A stretch of DNA of 64,000 nucleotides from Selaginella moellendorffii. Lineage: Eukaryota; Plantae; Lycopodiophyta. Below are positions 4,844 to 35,117 of this stretch, in pieces (within the stretch, counting starts at the first letter, position 1; each line of letters begins with the position of its first letter). Below the pieces are notes generated by a model, which was given only the letters and a program-made list of their open reading frames with translations, was not told where the DNA came from and searched no databases. The translations under genes and the position numbers were made by a program. The stretch is from contig NW_003314300.1 of NCBI RefSeq assembly GCF_000143415.4, positions 961,898 through 1,025,897 of the forward strand, in the 5' to 3' direction.

Positions 4844-7800
4844 CGGAGGGACCTTGCGCGAATAAATCAGTGACCCCTCCATCTTTCTTTCGGGAGTATC
4901 ATCAAAGGGTTCACTCGGCACCAGTTCATCCAGTGTTTACTTTCCAAGCTCGTTTTTATAACAAGAGGTCTCCTATTATTCTCTCCATGTTGGTTGATAT
5001 AGGTTCGAGTTTATCTTCTATTGCTCGACCTATTGCCACACGTTGTCGTCTACACTTGCGTCGTACGGCAGAATCAGTTTTCATTCTTTATGACAACGGC
5101 CGTACACATGCATGTGCATGGGATGAGGTGGACCTAGTTGTGCGTGTGGGCAATCTCGAGCTTGAGTTGCAGTTGTTGCGGGTGGTGCTGAGTCAAACTT
5201 TTGACCTCATTCTTGGTATGGATTAGTTGTAGCGCAATCATGCCAAGTGTGACTTTGAGGCTTCTCCCCCTTGTCTCATACTTCCATATGTTTCATCCAT
5301 TCCTCTCACTTCCATACCTCTTCGTCCCTCTACTTTTACCTCTGCTTCCATTACTTTTGTTCCCCCACTCTTTCCTTCTATGTTTCCATCTTGTTCTGCT
5401 TTTCCCTTTTCCGATCCCTCTGACGATTTTTGTGTTGCAGCAGTTGACCGGCTCATGAAGGAGTATTCTGATCTCTTTGAATTTGACCTATCGTCTGGGG
5501 CCAAGATTGCCACACGTCATCCGATTCCAACCGGGGATGCTCATCCAATCAAGGTTCCTGTTCGTCGTCAGTCACCTAAGGAGATCAAGATTTTACGAGC
5601 AAACGTCAAGGAAATGCTAGAGAAGGGTGTTATTCGGAAGTCGCGGAGTCCTTGGGCATGTGAACCTCATCTTATGACGAAGTCTGATGGGAGTATTCGT
5701 TTCTGCATCAACTATCGTCCGTTAAACGAGTGACGATTCCAGATGTGTATCCTCTTCCTCACACTGCTGATCTCTTGGATCATCTGGGGCGAAATCGTTG
5801 GTTCATCAAGCTAGATCTTGCTTCTGGGTATTGGCAAGTACCGATAGCCGAAGAAGATATTCTTAAGACTGTTTTTTGTATACCATTTGGTTTGTACGAG
5901 TTTTTGGTGATGCTGTTTGGTTTGAACAATGCTCTAGCAACTTTCCAGCGGATGATGGATGAGGTTCTTTGCAATATGCCAGAGGTGACTGCTGACTTCA
6001 TTGATGATGCTTGATCCACTCGGAGGGGACGTGGGAGGAGCATGTTCATGATGTTTGTAAAGTGTTGGATCGGCTACGCGACGTTGGTTTAAAGCTGAAG
6101 CGGTCAAAGTGCGTGTTTGGGTTCAAGGACACAACTTATCTTGGGTACTGTATTTCTCGTGAGGGTTTGCAAGTTGATCTTGACAAACTTGTGGCTGTTC
6201 TAAAGTTCCCTACTCCGAAGTGTGTAAATGATGTGCAGCGCTTTTTGGGTAAGGTGCAGTATCTCGGTCGTTTTGTGGATCATCTTTCCGATCGCACTAC
6301 ACCATTGCGAGCGTTGTTGAAGTCATCAATGTCATCTTTCATCTGGTCTCCAGATTGTGAGCAGGCGTTCGTGGATCTCAAAGAGCTATTGATGACTCCT
6401 CCGGTTTTGGCATATCCTAACTACACTCGACCTTTTATTTTGCGCGTGGATGCTTCTGACATTGGTATTGGAGGTGTGTTGATGCAAGAGAGCTAGAGTG
6501 TGCCTGGTCAGCGCCATCCCATTGCATACATAAGCCGTACATTACAACCAGCGGAGATGAACTACTCCACGACGGAGAATGAGTGTTTAGCAGCAGTCTG
6601 GGGTTTCGAGAAACTTCATGCATATCTACATGGTTCTCGGACGTTACTTGAAGGTGACCATACTGTTGTTACTTTATTATTGAAGCAAAAGAACCTGGTT
6701 GGTCGTACAGCTCAATGGGCTTTGAAGCTTCAGATATATGATTTCGATGTTGTTTATCGCCCAGGGAGTTCTATGGTTGATGCTGATGCCCTTTCTCGAG
6801 CTCCTCTTCCTTCTCCACTCACTTCTCATGTTTCTGACGAACCTGTTCTAGCATCTATGGATTTTCTAGATGAGGATTCTGTGCCATCGGCGGTTGCTGT
6901 CCTTGACGTTCAGTGTCCACAGGGTGCAGAGCAAGATCTACCTTCTCTTGATGAGGTTCGCGAGGCTCAAAAGATTGAGCCATGGATTCAAAGGCTTCGA
7001 GATGGGTTTGAGAATCCTGCATCACTTGCTGATGACTTACCTTTTCGGCATTTACATTCTCAATATCGCCTTGAAGATGGCCCTCTGTATTTTGTGGGGA
7101 CGGATCCTGATGATCATTTACAGCTGGTGGTGCCTTTAGTGTTTATTCCGCGGTTTCTCCATGCCTACCATGATTCTCCTGTTCTAGGTGGGCATATGGG
7201 ACACCGTCGTGTCACCGAGAAGCTGCGCAGGTTTTTCTATTGGCCGGAGATGCGACGTGATATTATCTGGTATGTGCGTAGCTGCGTTTGGTGCCAAGCT
7301 CATAATACTCCCCCTCGTGCTGCGGAAGGATGGTTGGAGTCAATTGTGGTTTCCCGTCCATTTGAGTTAGTGGTGTTTGATCTTATGGGACCTTTTCCAC
7401 GGTCGACTGCTGGCAATGAGTATGTTATTATTGCTTCTAACTACTTGACTCATTAAGTGGAAGTTGGTGCTCTTGCTAGCACCTCTGCAACTACTGTTGG
7501 ATACTTCCTCCTCAATCGAGTGGTGTTCTAGCATTCTTGTTCAGAGCGGATTCTTTCGGATAATGGTTGGCTGAGGCATTTCATGTTTTTACGTCTCAAT
7601 TGGGGATATGCCACAATTTCATGAGTGCTTGTCATCCACAATCAGATGGTCTGGTGGAACGGCTTGTTCGGACATTCAAAGGGATGATTGCGAAGTATGT
7701 GAACTTTTAGCATTTGGATTGGGATGGTTATTTGCCGTCTCTTCGGTATGCATATGTTACAGAGGTGTAGAGTTCTATTGGTGCTTCACCATATAAACTC

Positions 7801-27005: not shown

Positions 27006-28295
27006 TCAGCAAGCCAGCGTTGCCGTCTCCCATGGCTTTGGCGTCGGGGCCTGCGATCGTTGCCATGGAGAGGGAGAAGCTTTGAGCTGCTGCTGCTCGT
27101 CTCGCTTCGCAGTCGCGGCGGTGGCGGTGGCGATGGTGGAGGATCCGTGACTGCTCGGCTTCGCCTTTTTCACAGAAGAAGGCGTCGGCGGCCTGCGCTT
27201 GAGCGAATCCACTCTCTCGAGCTTTCGCTTTGCCGGCTGCTGGTGCTGCTGCGGCTGCTGGTGCTGCTTCTTTCTGTCCAGCTTCGATCTCATCTCGGTG
27301 CACGCCTCGTGCGAGATCGGCAGCTCCGCCGGCGCGCAAGCCAGAGGCTCCGTCCACAGGTAGTCCGACAGCAGCGCCTGCTCGGCCGTGATCCGCTTCT
27401 CGGGGTTGAGCGTCAGCATCTGCTCGAGCAGATCCAGCGCTCTCGGGTCCACGTTGTTGAACGCCTTGCGCAGCCGCCGCGGCTTCTTCCCGTTCTCGGC
27501 CACGAACTTCGCGTAAACCGGCGACTTGGACACCCCCGGCCAGCTCGTCTCGTCCGGAGTGCCGCACATCTTGAAGATCCAGGACAGCTGCTGCTTCTCG
27601 TCCTTGCCCGGGAGGATCGACTGGCAGACGAGCAGCTCCGCGAAGACGCAGCCCAGCGACCACATATCCACGGCGGGGCCGTAGGACGAGAACCCAAGGA
27701 GGAGCTCCGGCGGCCGGTTCCAAAGCGTCACTACTCCACAGTGGAGCGGCCGGGGCGTCTCGGGGATGGGCGTGGACATGCCAAAGTCGGCGAGCTTGAG
27801 CACCCCTTTGCCGCTCACCAGGAGATTGGCCGACTTGATGTCCCTGTGCATCACTCCATTGAGATGGCAGTAGTGGAGGCCCTCGAGGATCTGCTTGAGG
27901 TAGCACTTGATCTCCGGGGCCGAGAACTTATGCCGGTGGATGAGCCCACAAAGGTCGTGCTTCATATACTCGAAGACAAGGAAGATGTCGGTGGCCGCGT
28001 AGATCACATCCAGGAGCTTGACAACGTGATCGTTGTTGAGCAGCCGGAGGACCTTGATCTCGATGGCAATCGACGCCGGCACATCGCGCAGCTCGCCGCC
28101 GGCCTCTCTGACCTTTAGCGTCGCCTCTTTGGGGTCGACCCTTAGCCGCTTGATTGCCACGCGCTCGCTGGTCTGCTTGTCCGTGGCCAGGAACACCTTG
28201 CCATACTTCCCGCGGCCGATCGATTCCACTGCCACATACCTCTCAAGCGCTGGGAACTCCTGTGACAAGATTTCGCCCCCTTCGCTCACTCCCAT
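27006..28295 (-). CDS. Intronless divergent cyclin-dependent kinase (CDKC/CDK9-like)
   Basis: GRGKYGKV, VAIK, VFEYMKHDL, HRDIKSANLL, DFG, VVTLWNRPPELLLG, SHE motif; single 429-aa exon. Confidence 0.88.
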   Translation of the reverse strand: MGVSEGGEILSQEFPALERYVAVESIGRGKYGKVFLATDKQTSERVAIKRLRVDPKEATLKVREAGGELRDVPASIAIEIKVLRLLNNDHVVKLLDVIYAATDIFLVFEYMKHDLCGLIHRHKFSAPEIKCYLKQILEGLHYCHLNGVMHRDIKSANLLVSGKGVLKLADFGMSTPIPETPRPLHCGVVTLWNRPPELLLGFSSYGPAVDMWSLGCVFAELLVCQSILPGKDEKQQLSWIFKMCGTPDETSWPGVSKSPVYAKFVAENGKKPRRLRKAFNNVDPRALDLLEQMLTLNPEKRITAEQALLSDYLWTEPLACAPAELPISHEACTEMRSKLDRKKQHQQPQQHQQPAKRKLERVDSLKRRPPTPSSVKKAKPSSHGSSTIATATAATAKRDEQQQLKASPSPWQRSQAPTPKPWETATLAC

Positions 28296-28423
28296 AGCCT
28301 ATCCACAAACCCTAAAGGAATGAGCCTTATAAACCCTAATAGCCAGCCGTGGATCTCTTTTCGTCCCAGCCGTTGGATCCCAGATCTTTGTAGGAGAGCG
28401 GTTTTCACCTTTTAGGGCTCGAA
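28296..28423. promoter_or_regulatory. 128-bp bidirectional promoter region with two telo-boxes and an MSA-like element
   Basis: AAACCCTAA at 28307 and 28331; AGCCGTTGGA (TCCAACGGCT on the minus strand) at 28368-28377, between the divergent ATGs. Confidence 0.55.
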
Positions 28424-31400
28424 ATGTTGCCCGCGATGGAGGAAGATGACGAGAGCTCCGATTCCAGCTTCTCGACCGTGTCATCGTCGGCGCCGCTGAC
28501 AAGGAATGCAAGCGGCATTGGCTGCTCCTCGATCTTTACCAGGATTCGAGGAGGTCGAGGTAGGCAGCATCGCCAGCATCATCGCGCCAGGGGCGGCGGC
28601 GATCGAGCTGGTGCTGTCAGGATCGGATCGAGCCCTTACAAATTGCAGGAGAGGATTCTGTCCAGGCAGAAGGGAGACGCGAGGAATCGATCGGGGCTGG
28701 GCCAATTGCTCTCGCCGGATCGTCTCAACGTGTCTGTTGCTCGCAATATTTTTCCTGGCGACAATGTGGTGGATGTACAGAAGGAACAGGCCAGCTCCTT
28801 TCGGCGAGATAGAATGTCGCAGAAACTTTGCGAAGCGTCGGGAACCAAGATCGAGCAGCCCCACAAATCTGGAACTCTATCATCAGCCATCGCGGAAATC
28901 TTTCGCTGTTTCATCTGCTTGGGAAAGGTAGTAGTCTTTCTCGTTCCATATAGAGTCTCACTGACCGTTCTTTGTTTTGTTTCTTCATTCCAGCTTATGG
29001 ATGCTCAACTTTGTCCATGCTGCTCTAAGCTGGTGTGCATGCTATGTATCAAAGTACGCCTTGCAGCCTGAATCATTTCCAAGGTCATTTGATAAACTCA
29101 AGCTCTTCTCACTTCTTTTTCTCATCTGTGTCGTCGGCCTGGTTGCAGCGCTGGTTAACCGATCAGAAGCCCGAGTGCCCTCACTGCCGTGCCTCGCTCT
29201 CGGTCTCGCAACTTGTAGGCTGCAAATTCATTTCCGAGATTACGACGGTACGTGAGTTTGCGAGTTCCGACTGACTTCTCATTCATTTTGCTTTCGCAGG
29301 AAGTGGAGAAAATACACGGGAATTTTGACGAGGATGCTCCACCAGAGAAGGTAGAAGGCTACATTTTCGTGTGCTCGCACCGACCTTTTCTATTGCAGAT
29401 TTGCCCAGCTCATGGCAGTCCACTTTCGTATTTCTGCACCACATGCTCGACTGCAGTGTGCTCCGACTGCGCCATCCTGGCCGAGGTCATACTCGCTCTT
29501 TCTTTTTTCACTTATCTTACTCTGGTTTCTATAGAGCCACCAAAACCACTCGTTTGAACGCCTAAATGTGACCTATGGAAGGCATTCCAAAAAATTGCAT
29601 GTCGAGGCATCAGCTCTACGTTCACGTCTTAAAGTAAGGATTATTACGACTGTTAGGTGTAATGCTAAGTCTTCTCTTTTGCTCAGGATTTGTATGATAT
29701 GCTGGCGTCGGTTGACAATGACATTGAAGCTGTCTTGAAGGTATATCATATGTTTGCGTGTGTGACTTATGTCCTTAAGAACAGGCCAAAGATGATCAAG
29801 CGACTGAGATTGAAGCGGCTTTCAAAAGAATGCGGGTGAGAACTGCTTTCTTTTTGCAAGAACAGGAATTGCTATCGTTTTACTGATGTGATATGCAGGC
29901 GAAGCTCGAAGAACAGCTCAAATGCAAGCTGCTGACACTATTGGCACAGAAGGGTGCTGTTTCTCAAGAGGTATGAGATTTTATTTATGCTACGGCTCAG
30001 CCTGATTTGCTGGCCTCTGCAGGTGGAGTTGTTAGAGACCATTTTGCGTCAACTTGATTTTCAATTAACTACATCGTCCAAGAGCGATCTCATCGCTCAT
30101 GAACCGACAATTACATGTATTATACAGGTGATACTGGTTCTTGTTGTGTAGCGCACGATCTCATTCGATAAGTTTCCAGGACTTGCACAAGAAAATCAAT
30201 CTTGAATTAAGGCGGGACCCTGTTTCTTCAGATTTTGTTTCCGAGGTATCCCACACGAGCTAACTTTATGCATATACAATTTTTGTGGTAGGTTATTCCT
30301 CCGTTTGAGCACGGGGAGCTTGTTCTTAAGAACTTCAGAAAGTATTTGCATGCGAAACCAAGCAAGAGCAACGATTCTTCTAGTACAACTGACTCCACAA
30401 GCGACATCGTTTACAGTGCGGTGGGTACCTTAGATGCAGTGGACATAACAAGGAGGTGAAATAATGGCATCTTGTTTGAAACTTGTCACTGCTAACTAAA
30501 ACTTCTTCGTTACTGTAGCCGATTTCTGCCGCCGGGATTACCTGGCGCCTAAAGGTACTTGAACTGTTCGTGCGGTTGCAGTCACGATCCTGACTTGATC
30601 GTGCAGCTGTATCCAAATGGTAGTGGTTCATCGAAGGGAAGCCACATTTCTGCATTTCTTGAGGTCGGCCTCTTCATTCAATGTACCTGAGAAAAACTAA
30701 CGCTAGTCACGTCTAGATGGTCAAAGGTGGCTCTGAGCCTACAACATATGAATATGGCATAGAGATGTTACATCGTTCGCAGCCGCACATGAAAGTTGTG
30801 AGGCGATTCTCTTCGGATTTTGAGGCAATCGATATCTCCAGATCATTTGATTGTAACTTACAAGGGCCACATTACAGGAAGGTGCATGCTGGGGGTACTA
30901 TCAATTTTTCAAGATTGATGACCTTGAAAACGAAGGGTACCTTCTTCCGGGGGAAGATACACTTACGCTGAGCTTTTACGTCCGAGCTCAAACGTCAGTA
31001 ATCCAATCCATTGATTGATGACTGTGACACTTGATGAATTTGACGCCGTGCTTTCGATTCAGGTTCTTGCAACAATGCCTGGATCTGAGAAGAGCACTGT
31101 CATCGTGTCAAGCAGAACGGCAGGAAGCGGTGACGCAGGTAAAGCACGAGCGCCGTCCTTCTCTTAGTTCCGAGTTCTTACACTCAGCNNNNNNNNNNNN
31201 NNNNNNNNNNNNNNNNNNNNNNNNNNNNNNNNNNNNNNNNNNNNNNNNNNNNNNNNNNNNNNNNNNNNNNNNNNNNNNNNNNNNNNNNACAACCAAGGAT
31301 CGATAAAGCAGGTCCTGGCGGGTGCAGTGTCAAGCCTCTTGCCAACTTTTGAACAGCCCAACCCAAAGGCTGCCAGGGACACATTCAGCCGCTTGGACAA

Positions 31401-31716
31401 GATACTCCTCAGCGGTGTTCCAACATCAGACGCTCCCCAGAAGTCTGAGGTGGACGACCGCAGCGACGCCCCATCAATGGCGCTGTCCCAGGCATCGGTG
31501 CAGCCAGAGAGCAGGGAGAAGTGTGAGCTGTGGCTCAAGAGCCGAGACAACTTGTTCCAGATGCCAGCTAGTAGGAGCAAGTTTTATGGTCGCAGGGGCC
31601 ACAGGCACAGGAAGAGCAACAGGGCCTTCGATGTCGTTTCGCTTGCCAAGCGCACCAGAATGGCGACGCTGCCTTGCGCCATACTGGAAGGAAACGACGA
31701 GAGCGTCAATACGTGA
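28424..31716 (+). CDS. TRIM37-like: TRIM37-like E3 ubiquitin ligase (RING, B-box, coiled coil, MATH); many short introns; spans an N gap
   Basis: RING [46 protein letters not shown]; B-box CPAHGSPLSYFCTTCSTAVCSDCA...H..H; MATH GITWRLKLYPNG...SAFLE...CWGY.QF...GYLL..EDTLTLSFYVR. Confidence 0.85.
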
Positions 31717-33249
31717 TTGTCGAGGTAATTTTTTGCTTGGTGGAAAAGTTTGGATTAAGTTTACTCTTCCCGGCTTACTTTAATAAACACTTTTCAGGTT
31801 ACAAACTGAAATGATCAGAAAGTTATTAATGTTCAAGGAATTGGATTAAGTTTAAATGGATTCTTAAAAGTACAAACTGAAATGCTGCTAGTGTATGAGC
31901 AAGTTGTTAATTTTTAGCCAATTAAGGGAACTAACTAGTTGCCTTAGTCAAAATTGATTGGTATCACAAATTCCATTAAACATGATTTCTCTTTCATTGG
32001 TGAAAGATTAATGAAGCTGCATTTCAGATTGTAATCCTTGAGTGACATCAGCCTGGGGTCAGAATTTGCTTGAATTAGGAGGAAGACCAGGCTGAACCTT
32101 CTCAGAGTCAATGCCAATTTTCTGGTGGGACATTGTTGTTTTCAGCTTTTAAATACTTGCCAGCTGCATTATCATTGAAAGTCCCTCCCACTGAATTCTT
32201 ATGCCCACAGAAAGTGGAGGGCAAAGATTGAAATCCCCAAGGCCGTTGACATCTCCATCACCCCAACAGTGGAGTGTGTCAGCAATGCAGCAAGCAACAC
32301 CAACATTATGGTGATGTTGCCCCACAAATCCCTGTGATCCAAACGTCACAAGAGAAAAGAAGAGAAGTGTGGAAGCTCACCTTATCTGATCACACTCTCT
32401 CTCAAGTATCAAATTGAATGAATGGATGCTTCTCTCCACATACCTAGCCCCACTCTTGCAATTTGCCTCCATACTTTTGTTCAGGGATTTTTCTACCATT
32501 TCTCTATTGAGTGTTTGGATTCCTTTGGGATTCTCCATTCCATTCCCACGTTCTAACTCATGCAAGACAACGATTTGGGAGATTCCGAGCTTCCCAAATG
32601 TAGCGATTCACAGCGGTCCAGCAAAAAGAAAGGCCGAGATCGAGAAAACTGGACGAAATTTTGAAGAGACAAGTTGTCTCTTAAAAGGAGTGGGTGAGTG
32701 AGAACTCGCTTTCGCAACTAGCAGCGTATCTCTGTCGCGAATGACAAAAACAAAAGCTTTAGGGCTCCATCTGACGTGGGTCCGACTCGGCGAAGATACC
32801 GCCGCGTGGCGAGACAGCTCGGACGCCACGTCACGCGGTTTGGGCGCGCAATTATTGGTCACGGTGCCCCGTACGGGCACTTTGGGCCTCCGTACAGGTG
32901 ACAACTTGGAGCCAACACGAATGGTTTGGCGAGGGATTTTTTTTTTGAAGGAGAGTAGCGAAGGGGTCAGCGGCGGCGGTGGCGGCGGGGCTTTTCTTTT
33001 CTCTTGTTTCTCCGGCGCGGCGGCTGGATTCTTTCGATAGCAGCGAGGATTTTGGATTGCATTGGATTGGATCGTTGCGGCGCTGCTCCAGGATTGTTGG
33101 GGATTTCGCATCTCCCGCGCGGCGCTGGCGTGTCTAGGGCCGCGGGGCAGCTCCCAGGAGCTGCGCAGCGTTCTTGCTGAGGCGGTGCGGCAAAGAAATC
33201 GGGGATTTCTCCCCGGGATTTTGGAGCTGTCCATGCGCGGCGCCCGAAA

Positions 33250-35117
33250 ATGAGGTGAGCCGGAAGAGCTTTCTTGGTCGAAATTTCTCGCTCTCAGAGT
33301 CCATGGATTGGATTGCAGCAGCACCAGCGTCTCCGGACGAGGCTGTCCATATTTCGACCCGGAATACGACACTCTTTCGCTAAGATTAGATCCTCCAAGG
33401 TGAAATTTCTCCTCGAGCATGCGGTCGAATTCTTTTTGGAGCTAACCTTTCCCCTCTGGCGAATTTGCGTGACTGGCAGTGTCGTGATCGATAACACAAG
33501 CTGTCCGGACGCCACGCTTATCAAGGCAACCCCCTTACCTGTCTGTCTGTGCTCGTCTTAAATACTTTTTTCTTTCCACCAGGTTGATAGCAAAAACAAG
33601 CATGGAATTCTTCTCGAGGTCGTCCAAGTTCTCACAGACCTCGACCTGGCGATTTCCAAGGCCTACATTTCTTCCGATGGTGGCTGGTTTATGGATGGTA
33701 AGAAGGACGAACCTTGCAAAGCTTTTCTATTTGCTTTAGAACGGGAGTAAAGGTAGAACTTTAACCATTCTTTCTGTCAGTCTTCCATGTGACGGATCAG
33801 CTGGGAAACAAGCTCACAGACGAGGGAATCATCGATTACATCCAGCAGGTACCCACTAAGCTCTACACTTCCAGGTACTGTGGTTGCCACTAGCATAATT
33901 TACTAACTGCAAGAGCTTGCTTGCTTGCGGATTTACATGGCAGTCGCTCGGAGCAAAGCAAGATTCCCAGACGACCGAGGTCCAAACTTGTCTCGGCCGG
34001 CGGGTCAGCTTACGGTCCAACACAGAGCAAACTGCCATCGAGCTTTGCGGGAGGGATCGCCCGGGCCTCCTCTCCGACATCTCTGGAGTCCTCAAGGACA
34101 TGATGTGCAACGTTGTGGCTGCGGAGGTGTGGACGCACAACTTGAGAGTGGCTTGCGTGGTCTACGTCACGGACGAAGTCACGGGTGGCCCCATCGAAGA
34201 CGAGAAGAAACTGGCGGTAATCAAGGCGAGGCTGTCCCAAGCTTTGCAAGGTGACGAGAGCGGAAAAGGCTCCAAGACCGATATCCCGATGGCCGTGCTC
34301 CACACCGAGAGGCGGCTCCACCAGATCATGTCCGCCGACTTTGCTGCCATCCAGCCGGAGTCGACGAACACTTTCGTGGCCGCCGCCGATAAGACCAGGC
34401 CAGCCATCTCTGTCCAGAACTGCGCCGAGAAGGGATACTCCGTCGTCAACGTCCGGTGCAATGACCGCCCAAAGCTACTCTTCGACACGGTGTGTACGTT
34501 AACCGACATGAAGTACGTCGTCTTCCATGCCGCTATCCGGTCCGAGGGATCTTTCGCCTATCAGGTACGCACATTTCCGTTTCTCTCCACGCAACTGAAA
34601 TCGCTTTCACCAGGAGTACTACATCCGCCTCATGGATGGCTGCACGCTAAAGTCGGAAGCCGAGCAGGAGTACGTCGTCAAGTGCTTGGAAGCCGCCATA
34701 GAAAGACGAACCGGCGGGGTAAGCTTTCACAATTCATTAAATCTCGGAGAAGAAGAAGAATAGCTTTGATTTTTCTTCCAGGGAATCCGGCTGGAGCTTT
34801 GCACCAAGGACAGGGTGGGCCTCCTGTCCGACGTGACTCGCATCTTTCGCGAGAACGGACTCTCGGTGACGAGAGCGGACGTGTCCACACAAGGTGACAA
34901 GGCCGTCAATGTGTTCTACGTGACGGACGCGTCCGGGAACCCGGTGGACAGGCGGATCGTGGAGGCGACGCGCAAGGAAATCGGGCAAAGCATTCTCCAG
35001 GTGAAGGATTTGACGCCTTCTTCCCCAAACTCCCAGCACGAGGTCGCGAGCAAGTCGAGGTTCTCGTTTGGGACCTTTCTCTACAGCCTCGGCCTGATAA
35101 ACTCGCAACAAGTCTAG
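33250..35117 (+). CDS. ACR: ACT domain repeat (ACR) protein, 4 ACT domains
   Basis: First coding exon is ATGAG (33250-33254), then [75 protein letters not shown]. Confidence 0.92.

Follow-up and report, generated by a model that had tools for sequence, protein, structure and literature searches.

Structure of the gene and its assembly gap

A 64,000-nucleotide stretch of the Selaginella moellendorffii genome (assembly GCF_000143415.4, contig NW_003314300.1, forward-strand positions 961,898 to 1,025,897; hereafter the window) contains at 28424-31716, on the + strand, a gene of 18 exons encoding a protein of 759 residues. Sequence comparison identifies this gene as the TRIM37 orthologue of S. 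moellendorffii; among TRIM subfamilies, only TRIM37 is older than animals. The protein consists, in this order, of an N-terminal extension, a RING finger, one B-box, a coiled coil, a MATH domain and a tail. A preliminary description of this DNA had proposed a TRIM37-like ligase gene in a land plant, a RING closely following that of animal TRIM37, and a complete architecture of a RING, a B-box and a coiled coil (RBCC) plus MATH. All of this is borne out here: the protein is collinear with bird TRIM37 and belongs to a streptophyte clade inside the TRIM37 family, its RING matches the structure of the human RING (PDB 3LRQ) in sequence and in the superposed model, and the full architecture is supported by Pfam, the 3LRQ match, a predicted long helix and the two halves of the MATH_2 profile.

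We built the exon model by hand from the DNA and its three frames, which gave 17 exons within 28424-31138 and, from 31289 onward, an open reading stretch that ends in a TGA stop codon. The exons were searched singly; the longer queries were public proteins returned by the searches (P0095, P0001, P0019 and P0092). Exon 1 (28424-28927) begins at the first ATG at 28424 and encodes about 150 residues of a low-complexity, poorly conserved N-terminal extension, followed by the start of the RING with the first zinc pair (FRCFIC). The RING continues in exon 2 (28994-29053) and exon 3 (29149-29247; 33 residues), exon 4 (29300-29350) encodes the linker helix from the RING to the B-box, and exon 5 (29399-29485) the B-box, which ends at the start of exon 6. 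The coiled-coil region is encoded by exons 6-11 (29535-29633, 29687-29740, 29785-29835, 29899-29970, 30023-30127 and 30180-30245), and the MATH/TRAF domain by exons 12-16 (30292-30420, 30519-30554, 30607-30663, 30717-30824 and 30878-30993). Among the latter, exon 15 encodes 36 residues forming the middle strands of the domain, and exon 16, of which 38 residues were used in searches, ends in phase 2. Exon 17 (31063-31138) encodes a conserved helix that follows the MATH domain, and the visible part of exon 18 (31289-31716) a tail of low conservation that carries a basic patch close to its end, followed by the TGA stop codon at 31714-31716. The reading frame is kept in all exons, and the splice sites are standard. 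Intron 15 (30825-30877; 53 nt) is of the GC-AG type, and the remaining 16 introns are GT-AG, the visible introns measuring 44-98 nt. Exons 1-15 each comprise a whole number of codons, and the 15 introns after them are all in phase 0.

Two public proteins are encoded at this locus, and their exon-by-exon match confirms the hand-built model. GenBank SELMODRAFT_425390 (P0095; 719 aa), which was returned by a search from a plant orthologue, corresponds letter for letter to exons 2-14 and 16-18, together with exon 1 from the second ATG at 28436. RefSeq XP_024516254.1 (P0001; 269 aa), a 100% match in an exhaustive HMMER search with exon 16, corresponds to exons 15-18 and confirms the junction across intron 15. 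Neither public model is correct: exon 15, and with it the middle of the MATH domain, is missing from SELMODRAFT_425390, and XP_024516254.1 starts only at exon 15. Since exons 1-15 are whole numbers of codons, skipping any of them keeps the frame, and the model without exon 15 therefore still reads through. Exon 15 is genuine on three counts. When P0095, which lacks it, is aligned with bird TRIM37, a hole of 38 residues opens at exactly this place; the middle part of the Pfam MATH_2 profile is provided by this exon; and the same 36-residue exon is present in Physcomitrium.

The gene is interrupted in the window by a run of 100 N (31189-31288), which directly follows the visible 5' part of intron 17 (31139-31188; delimited by comparison with the sister scaffold). 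The first 5445 bases of scaffold GL377639.1, which contain no N, are 100% identical to window positions 27832-31188 and 99.5% identical to 31289-33225, with no mismatch and one gap in the latter part. At the place of the N run this scaffold has 87 bases: 5 complete intron 17, which measures 55 nt in all (GTAAAG...CTTCAG), and the other 82 open the coding sequence of exon 18 (27 codons and one base). The 28 residues hidden by the N run are carried by both P0095 and P0001 and hold a motif common to mosses and Chlorokybus. The two flanks of the N run are thus parts of one gene, in frame throughout yet noncontiguous, and as the hidden coding piece is located after the MATH domain, the RBCC and MATH architecture is complete in the visible letters. 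The N run had also been considered as pure intron, with 31138 joined in frame to 31312; this was rejected because the 28 residues would be missing. GL377639.1 starts 73 bases before the point matching window position 27832, and the window thus derives from a different scaffold or assembly covering this region. The two are identical across the TRIM37 gene and differ by one indel downstream.

Domains of the encoded protein

The RING finger (28907-29187) is joined by splicing from the last part of exon 1 and from exons 2 and 3, which align to residues 18-31, 31-51 and 52-83 of human TRIM37 (3LRQ), making the whole RING collinear. Exon 3 alone, searched against PDB, identified 3LRQ with an E value of 1.2e-8, the next RING following at 0.056 or worse, and in a structural superposition the RING of the predicted model matched 3LRQ with a root-mean-square deviation of 1.1 Å and 54% identity. 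All eight zinc ligands are present (C158, C161, C171, C174, C179, C182, C194 and C197 of P0095). Across 61 aligned members of the family, seven of the eight ligand columns do not vary, and that of C171 is at least 90% conserved. The Pfam profile zf-C3HC4_3 scored below the cut-off in P0095, as it did in bird TRIM37. Exon-wise Pfam scans were mostly blank because the exons comprise only 12-43 residues.

The single B-box, of type 2 (29402-29549), is encoded by exon 5 and the start of exon 6. It was recognized by Pfam PF00643 with E values of 3.5e-9 for exon 5 alone and 9.2e-11 for P0095. Its ligands are likewise all present (C236, H239, C247, C250, C255, C258, H265 and H268), seven of their columns being invariant and one at least 90% conserved in the 61-member alignment. 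Indeed, every residue that is invariant in the family is kept by the Selaginella protein. Mutation of C18, C109 or G322 disables human TRIM37 (PMC11482927), and the equivalents of these Mulibrey-site residues are all kept, with G478 in the position of G322. W120, a further residue whose mutation disables the human protein, is replaced by Leu in Selaginella. In human cells, the RING-dead mutant at C18 remains on its substrate.

The coiled-coil region (29562-30206) was delimited by an AlphaFold model and by alignment with the coiled coil of TRIM37. The model covers residues 148-486 of P0095 at a mean predicted local distance difference test score (pLDDT) of 89 and contains the RING, the linker helix, the B-box, a continuous helix of 100 residues and a return helix of 25 residues. 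The long helix after the B-box, residues 126-225 of the modeled part, is predicted with a pLDDT of about 95. A Foldseek search with this model ranked the TRIM37 RING best, followed by the tripartite motifs of TRIM28/KAP1, TRIM21, TRIM5alpha and TRIM72. Toxoplasma pre-conoid ring proteins (PDB 9YA0 chains AA-AD) also matched the RBCC model in the fold search, with an E value of about 1e-4. By this model-based match, TRIM-like proteins may have been built into another tubulin-based structure, the pre-conoid ring.

The MATH/TRAF domain (30292-30993) was identified by Pfam MATH_2 and by the search with exon 16. Neither P0095 nor P0001 contains exons 12-16 together, and the domain was accordingly scanned as two halves, which covered profile positions 12-55 in P0095 and 68-134 in P0001. 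With exon 16 as query, TRIM37 proteins of many different eukaryotes were retrieved, and a comparison of the MATH exon with PDB sequences found no relative. From algae to animals, the MATH domain and the helix after it are strongly conserved. A segment of the tail (about 31486-31610), with a cluster of basic residues after it, is found again in moss and in the Logan transcripts (tail of P0092; residues 766-811 of P0019); it may act as a nuclear-targeting or binding patch.

Family membership, descent and distribution

P0095 matches bird TRIM37 with an E value of 7e-103 and 36% identity over 497 residues, collinearly from residue 8 to about 490, spanning RING, B-box, coiled coil and MATH domain, and Pfam detected the same set of domains in the Selaginella, moss and bird proteins. 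Significant matches to queries with RING and B-box or with plant orthologues were all proteins with B-box and MATH domain, except for an Allomyces protein without MATH, and three metagenomic or Logan proteins and one isoform of the echinoderm Antedon with MATH but no B-box match. The Atlas clusters nearest to the query are named TRIM37. Vertebrate TRIM37, including the human protein (MUL; TRIM class VIII, Subfamily A of Marín), has the same order of RING, B-box 2, coiled coil, MATH/TRAF and post-MATH helix and shares all zinc ligands with the Selaginella protein. By contrast, the Selaginella protein has about 150 extra N-terminal residues, and its tail is much shorter and unrelated (759 residues in all compared to 928 in the bird protein). 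The TRIM37-like proteins of the mosses Physcomitrium patens and Ceratodon purpureus (for example, XP_024373646.1) are about 60% identical in the RBCC part and 68-72% identical in RING and B-box, and they share the post-MATH motif that is hidden in the N run in Selaginella. The mosses differ in gene number, with two or three paralogues (880-950 residues) compared to the single gene seen in Selaginella, and in the exon structure after the MATH domain.

TRAF proteins such as TRAF6 likewise have an N-terminal RING, a coiled coil and a C-terminal MATH domain, and the RING region of TRAF6 was among the fold matches; a common origin of the TRIM37 and TRAF families has been proposed (Marín 2012, PMC3503706). 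However, TRAF proteins have their own TRAF-type zinc fingers and no B-box, the opposite of the Selaginella protein, in which a B-box is present and Pfam scans gave no zf-TRAF match; membership of the TRAF family is thereby ruled out. Membership of the plant MATH-BTB (BPM) or MATH-only proteins is also ruled out, given the presence of RING and B-box and no BTB match, and no angiosperm MATH protein reached an E value of 0.001 in the exon 16 search.

A maximum likelihood tree of 36 proteins (LG+G4) resolved the streptophyte proteins as (Mesostigma,(Chlorokybus,(Selaginella, mosses, Logan transcript group))), with supports of 99/99, 97/93 and 100/100, and in the same tree animals formed one group and fungi another. 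As the gene tree follows the species tree, TRIM37 is, on phylogenetic evidence, vertically inherited from a streptophyte ancestor. From RING to MATH, the exon sizes of Physcomitrium match those of Selaginella apart from two (16 vs. 17 and 48 vs. 43 residues), the Physcomitrium intron positions being approximate, with exon BLAST blocks that overlap by a few bases. The Physcomitrium exon block corresponding to exon 15 is also followed by GC (after position 4879 of the moss locus, within a 2-base block overlap), and a rare GC-AG splice site thus appears to have been conserved across the very old split between Selaginella and mosses.

Named holders of the gene in the green lineage are Physcomitrium (three genes), Ceratodon (two), Selaginella, Mesostigma and Chlorokybus, the last two being algae with a flagellate stage. 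Two further land-plant-like lineages carry it, one represented by about 40 Logan transcripts from one multispecies project (SRR8274965, SRR8274970, SRR8274988 and SRR21021230), and the other by a compact genomic contig (L010; SRR33208241). Besides animals, the holders include the protists Thecamonas, Ancoracysta, Diphylleia, two ciliates, Plasmodiophora, Ploeotia, Trimastix and Protostelium. In fungi, the gene was found only in Phlyctochytrium, Dinochytrium, Sorochytrium, Allomyces (without MATH), Piromyces and Basidiobolus (P0191 and P0192 in Basidiobolus; P0159, P0157, P0194, P0195 and P0196 in the zoosporic fungi). The first five of these genera make flagellate zoospores, and Basidiobolus is nonflagellate with a centriole-like body. 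Nearly all named holders have centrioles or flagella, as is the case for animals, ciliates, Thecamonas, Diphylleia, Ancoracysta, Ploeotia, Trimastix and Plasmodiophora. Neither one exhaustive HMMER search with exon 16 nor three word-index searches yielded a seed-plant protein, in agreement with the statement in the preliminary description that an angiosperm orthologue was not known. In the Atlas, which contains only clusters of at least 50 members, there was no plant-dominated cluster near the moss protein. To judge from these sequence searches, the range of TRIM37 in plants and fungi appears to follow centriole-bearing lineages closely. The confinement of the fungal genes to zoosporic lineages and Basidiobolus parallels the pattern in plants.

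The existence of a plant TRIM37 gene is already known. RefSeq labels both the Selaginella and the moss gene "TRIM37-like", environmental relatives are labeled "tripartite motif-containing protein 37" by the Joint Genome Institute (JGI), and TRIM37 genes in plants were reported earlier (Marín 2012, PMC3503706). According to a 2023 survey of plant MATH genes, green plants lack the TRIM37 family (PMC10218331); this agrees with our results for angiosperms but is wrong in its extension to all green plants. The literature searched contained no paper linking plant TRIM37 to centrioles or sperm. TRIM37 is treated in a review of how centrioles form de novo, which refers to work on plants separately, without connecting the two (PMC9014216), and the sperm-gene screen of Koshimizu et al. 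excluded by design families common with animals, so that TRIM37 could not have been found there. New here are the corrected full-length gene model of Selaginella, the proof that the assembly gap hides coding sequence, the tree evidence for vertical descent from a streptophyte ancestor, and a range in plants and fungi that follows centrioles.

Possible functions and neighboring features

Human TRIM37 is switched on at centrosomes when its MATH domain binds a clustered substrate, which brings B-boxes and RINGs together (PMC11482927; for centrosomal targets see also PMC9014216). By homology, the Selaginella protein would be a substrate-templated RING E3 ligase. Its coiled coil would form a dimer, and its MATH domain would bind a target protein only in the clustered state; lateral packing of the dimers through their B-boxes would follow, with pairing of neighboring RINGs and ubiquitination of the clustered substrate and of the ligase itself. 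By analogy with the human enzyme, the Selaginella protein very probably has ligase activity. A parallel to TRIM5alpha has been drawn for human TRIM37 (PMC11482927). TRIM5alpha is an RBCC ligase activated when B-boxes and RINGs meet on a repetitive surface, and its B-box and coiled-coil structure was a fold match of the Selaginella model; it differs in having a C-terminal SPRY instead of a MATH domain and in being animal-specific and antiviral.

As to the targets in plants, the range across plants and fungi favors centriole or microtubule-organizing center (MTOC) assemblies as the ancestral target. In plants, the likeliest targets would be precursors of such assemblies in spermatogenous cells, where centrioles arise from nothing, and the ligase would limit the number of these assemblies or clear stray ones. 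That centriole or MTOC assemblies are the target in plants is quite conceivable, although we would not call it probable. The preliminary description had proposed that TRIM37 is kept in plants whose flagellated sperm need centrioles formed de novo and may control bicentriole or blepharoplast number there; this interpretation is supported in part. The broader proposal, that TRIM37 is an ancestral eukaryotic guard of centriole and MTOC assembly whose presence follows centrioles, and that it polices the number of bicentrioles or blepharoplasts in the sperm mother cells of land plants, is possible but on the whole unlikely. If it is true, plants and animals would share a negative regulator of centriole-protein assemblies, with different substrates. 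It is a long-standing puzzle how plants that have no centrioles in any ordinary cell form them from nothing, and in the correct number, in their sperm mother cells. An orthologue of a human ligase that removes stray assemblies of centriole proteins is a sensible candidate here, and it can be knocked out in moss.

Several observations speak against such a centriolar role. We know of no plant counterparts of the human substrates centrobin and PLK4, and the plant targets would therefore have to differ. Many ancestral genes persist in early-branching lineages for reasons that have nothing to do with cilia, and Protostelium nocturnum, a holder of the gene, may be without flagella. Liverworts, ferns, Chara, Klebsormidium and Chlamydomonas have flagellate cells, and no named protein from any of these, nor from Ginkgo or cycads, was among the matches to our searches, which miss many true relatives (one word-index search returned only four bird proteins for all vertebrates). 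Absence from these groups is thus neither shown nor excluded, and the prediction that all flagellate plants keep TRIM37 could fail. In the protein itself, the human B-box interface residue W120 corresponds to Leu in Selaginella, in a column that is always hydrophobic across the family (F 29, W 17, L 11, I 3, V 1). The moss paralogue P0092 was assembled full length in 55 public RNA runs, which fits broad better than sperm-only expression; the other Physcomitrium genes, P0093 and P0094, were present only as fragments in few RNA runs, suggesting differences among the three paralogues in how strongly or where they are expressed. Finally, flies and nematodes have lost TRIM37 yet have centrioles (Marín 2012, PMC3503706), and TRIM37 is thus not needed for building a centriole.

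In an alternative reading, the gene is a true TRIM37 orthologue and E3 ligase whose work in plants is unrelated to centrioles and may concern another large assembly or signaling in vegetative cells, its loss from seed plants being one of many unconnected losses. The full-length transcripts of P0092 and the human centrosomal substrates for which we know of no plant counterpart both fit this alternative, as does a patchy range with repeated losses that include animals with centrioles (Marín 2012, PMC3503706). However, the distribution of the gene in plants and fungi tracks centriole-bearing lineages, and the conservation of the MATH domain and post-MATH helix from algae to animals suggests a shared kind of target. 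We consider a noncentriolar role a serious possibility, if a somewhat doubtful one.

Another function of human TRIM37 that the plant protein could have retained is at peroxisomes, where ubiquitination of the import receptor PEX5 would support the import of matrix proteins. This was reported for the human protein by Wang et al. (2017), as far as the citation in PMC9328179 goes, and an early peroxisomal localization of TRIM37 is noted in PMC11482927. We regard such a service as improbable in Selaginella. Peroxisomes and PEX5 occur in seed plants, in most fungi and in flies and nematodes, from none of which TRIM37 is known, and an ancestral indispensable role at peroxisomes therefore does not fit the range of the gene.

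That the gene is a contaminant, was recently acquired from an animal or protist, or is a pseudogene in decay might be suspected because TRIM proteins are usually regarded as animal proteins and the TRIM37 family was said not to be found in green plants (PMC10218331), but this is scarcely credible and is refuted, as far as sequence evidence goes, by 17 short introns sized like those of the compact gene on contig L010, a distance of 128 bp between its start codon and that of a kinase gene on the opposite strand, the identical copy on a second public scaffold, the exon structure in common with moss, a gene tree that mirrors the species tree, and a frame that is open throughout with all invariant residues kept.

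The kinase gene (27006-28295, - strand) is intronless, encodes a protein of 429 residues (Pfam Pkinase, E 4e-60) and is oriented head to head with TRIM37. Given the short distance between the two start codons, the genes probably share a promoter region. Downstream of TRIM37, an open reading frame at 33917-34897 (+ strand) encodes ACR9-like ACT domains (Pfam ACT, E 1.2e-13), and at 6500-7456 (+ strand) the window contains a retrotransposon pol fragment with RNase H and integrase zinc-binding domains.

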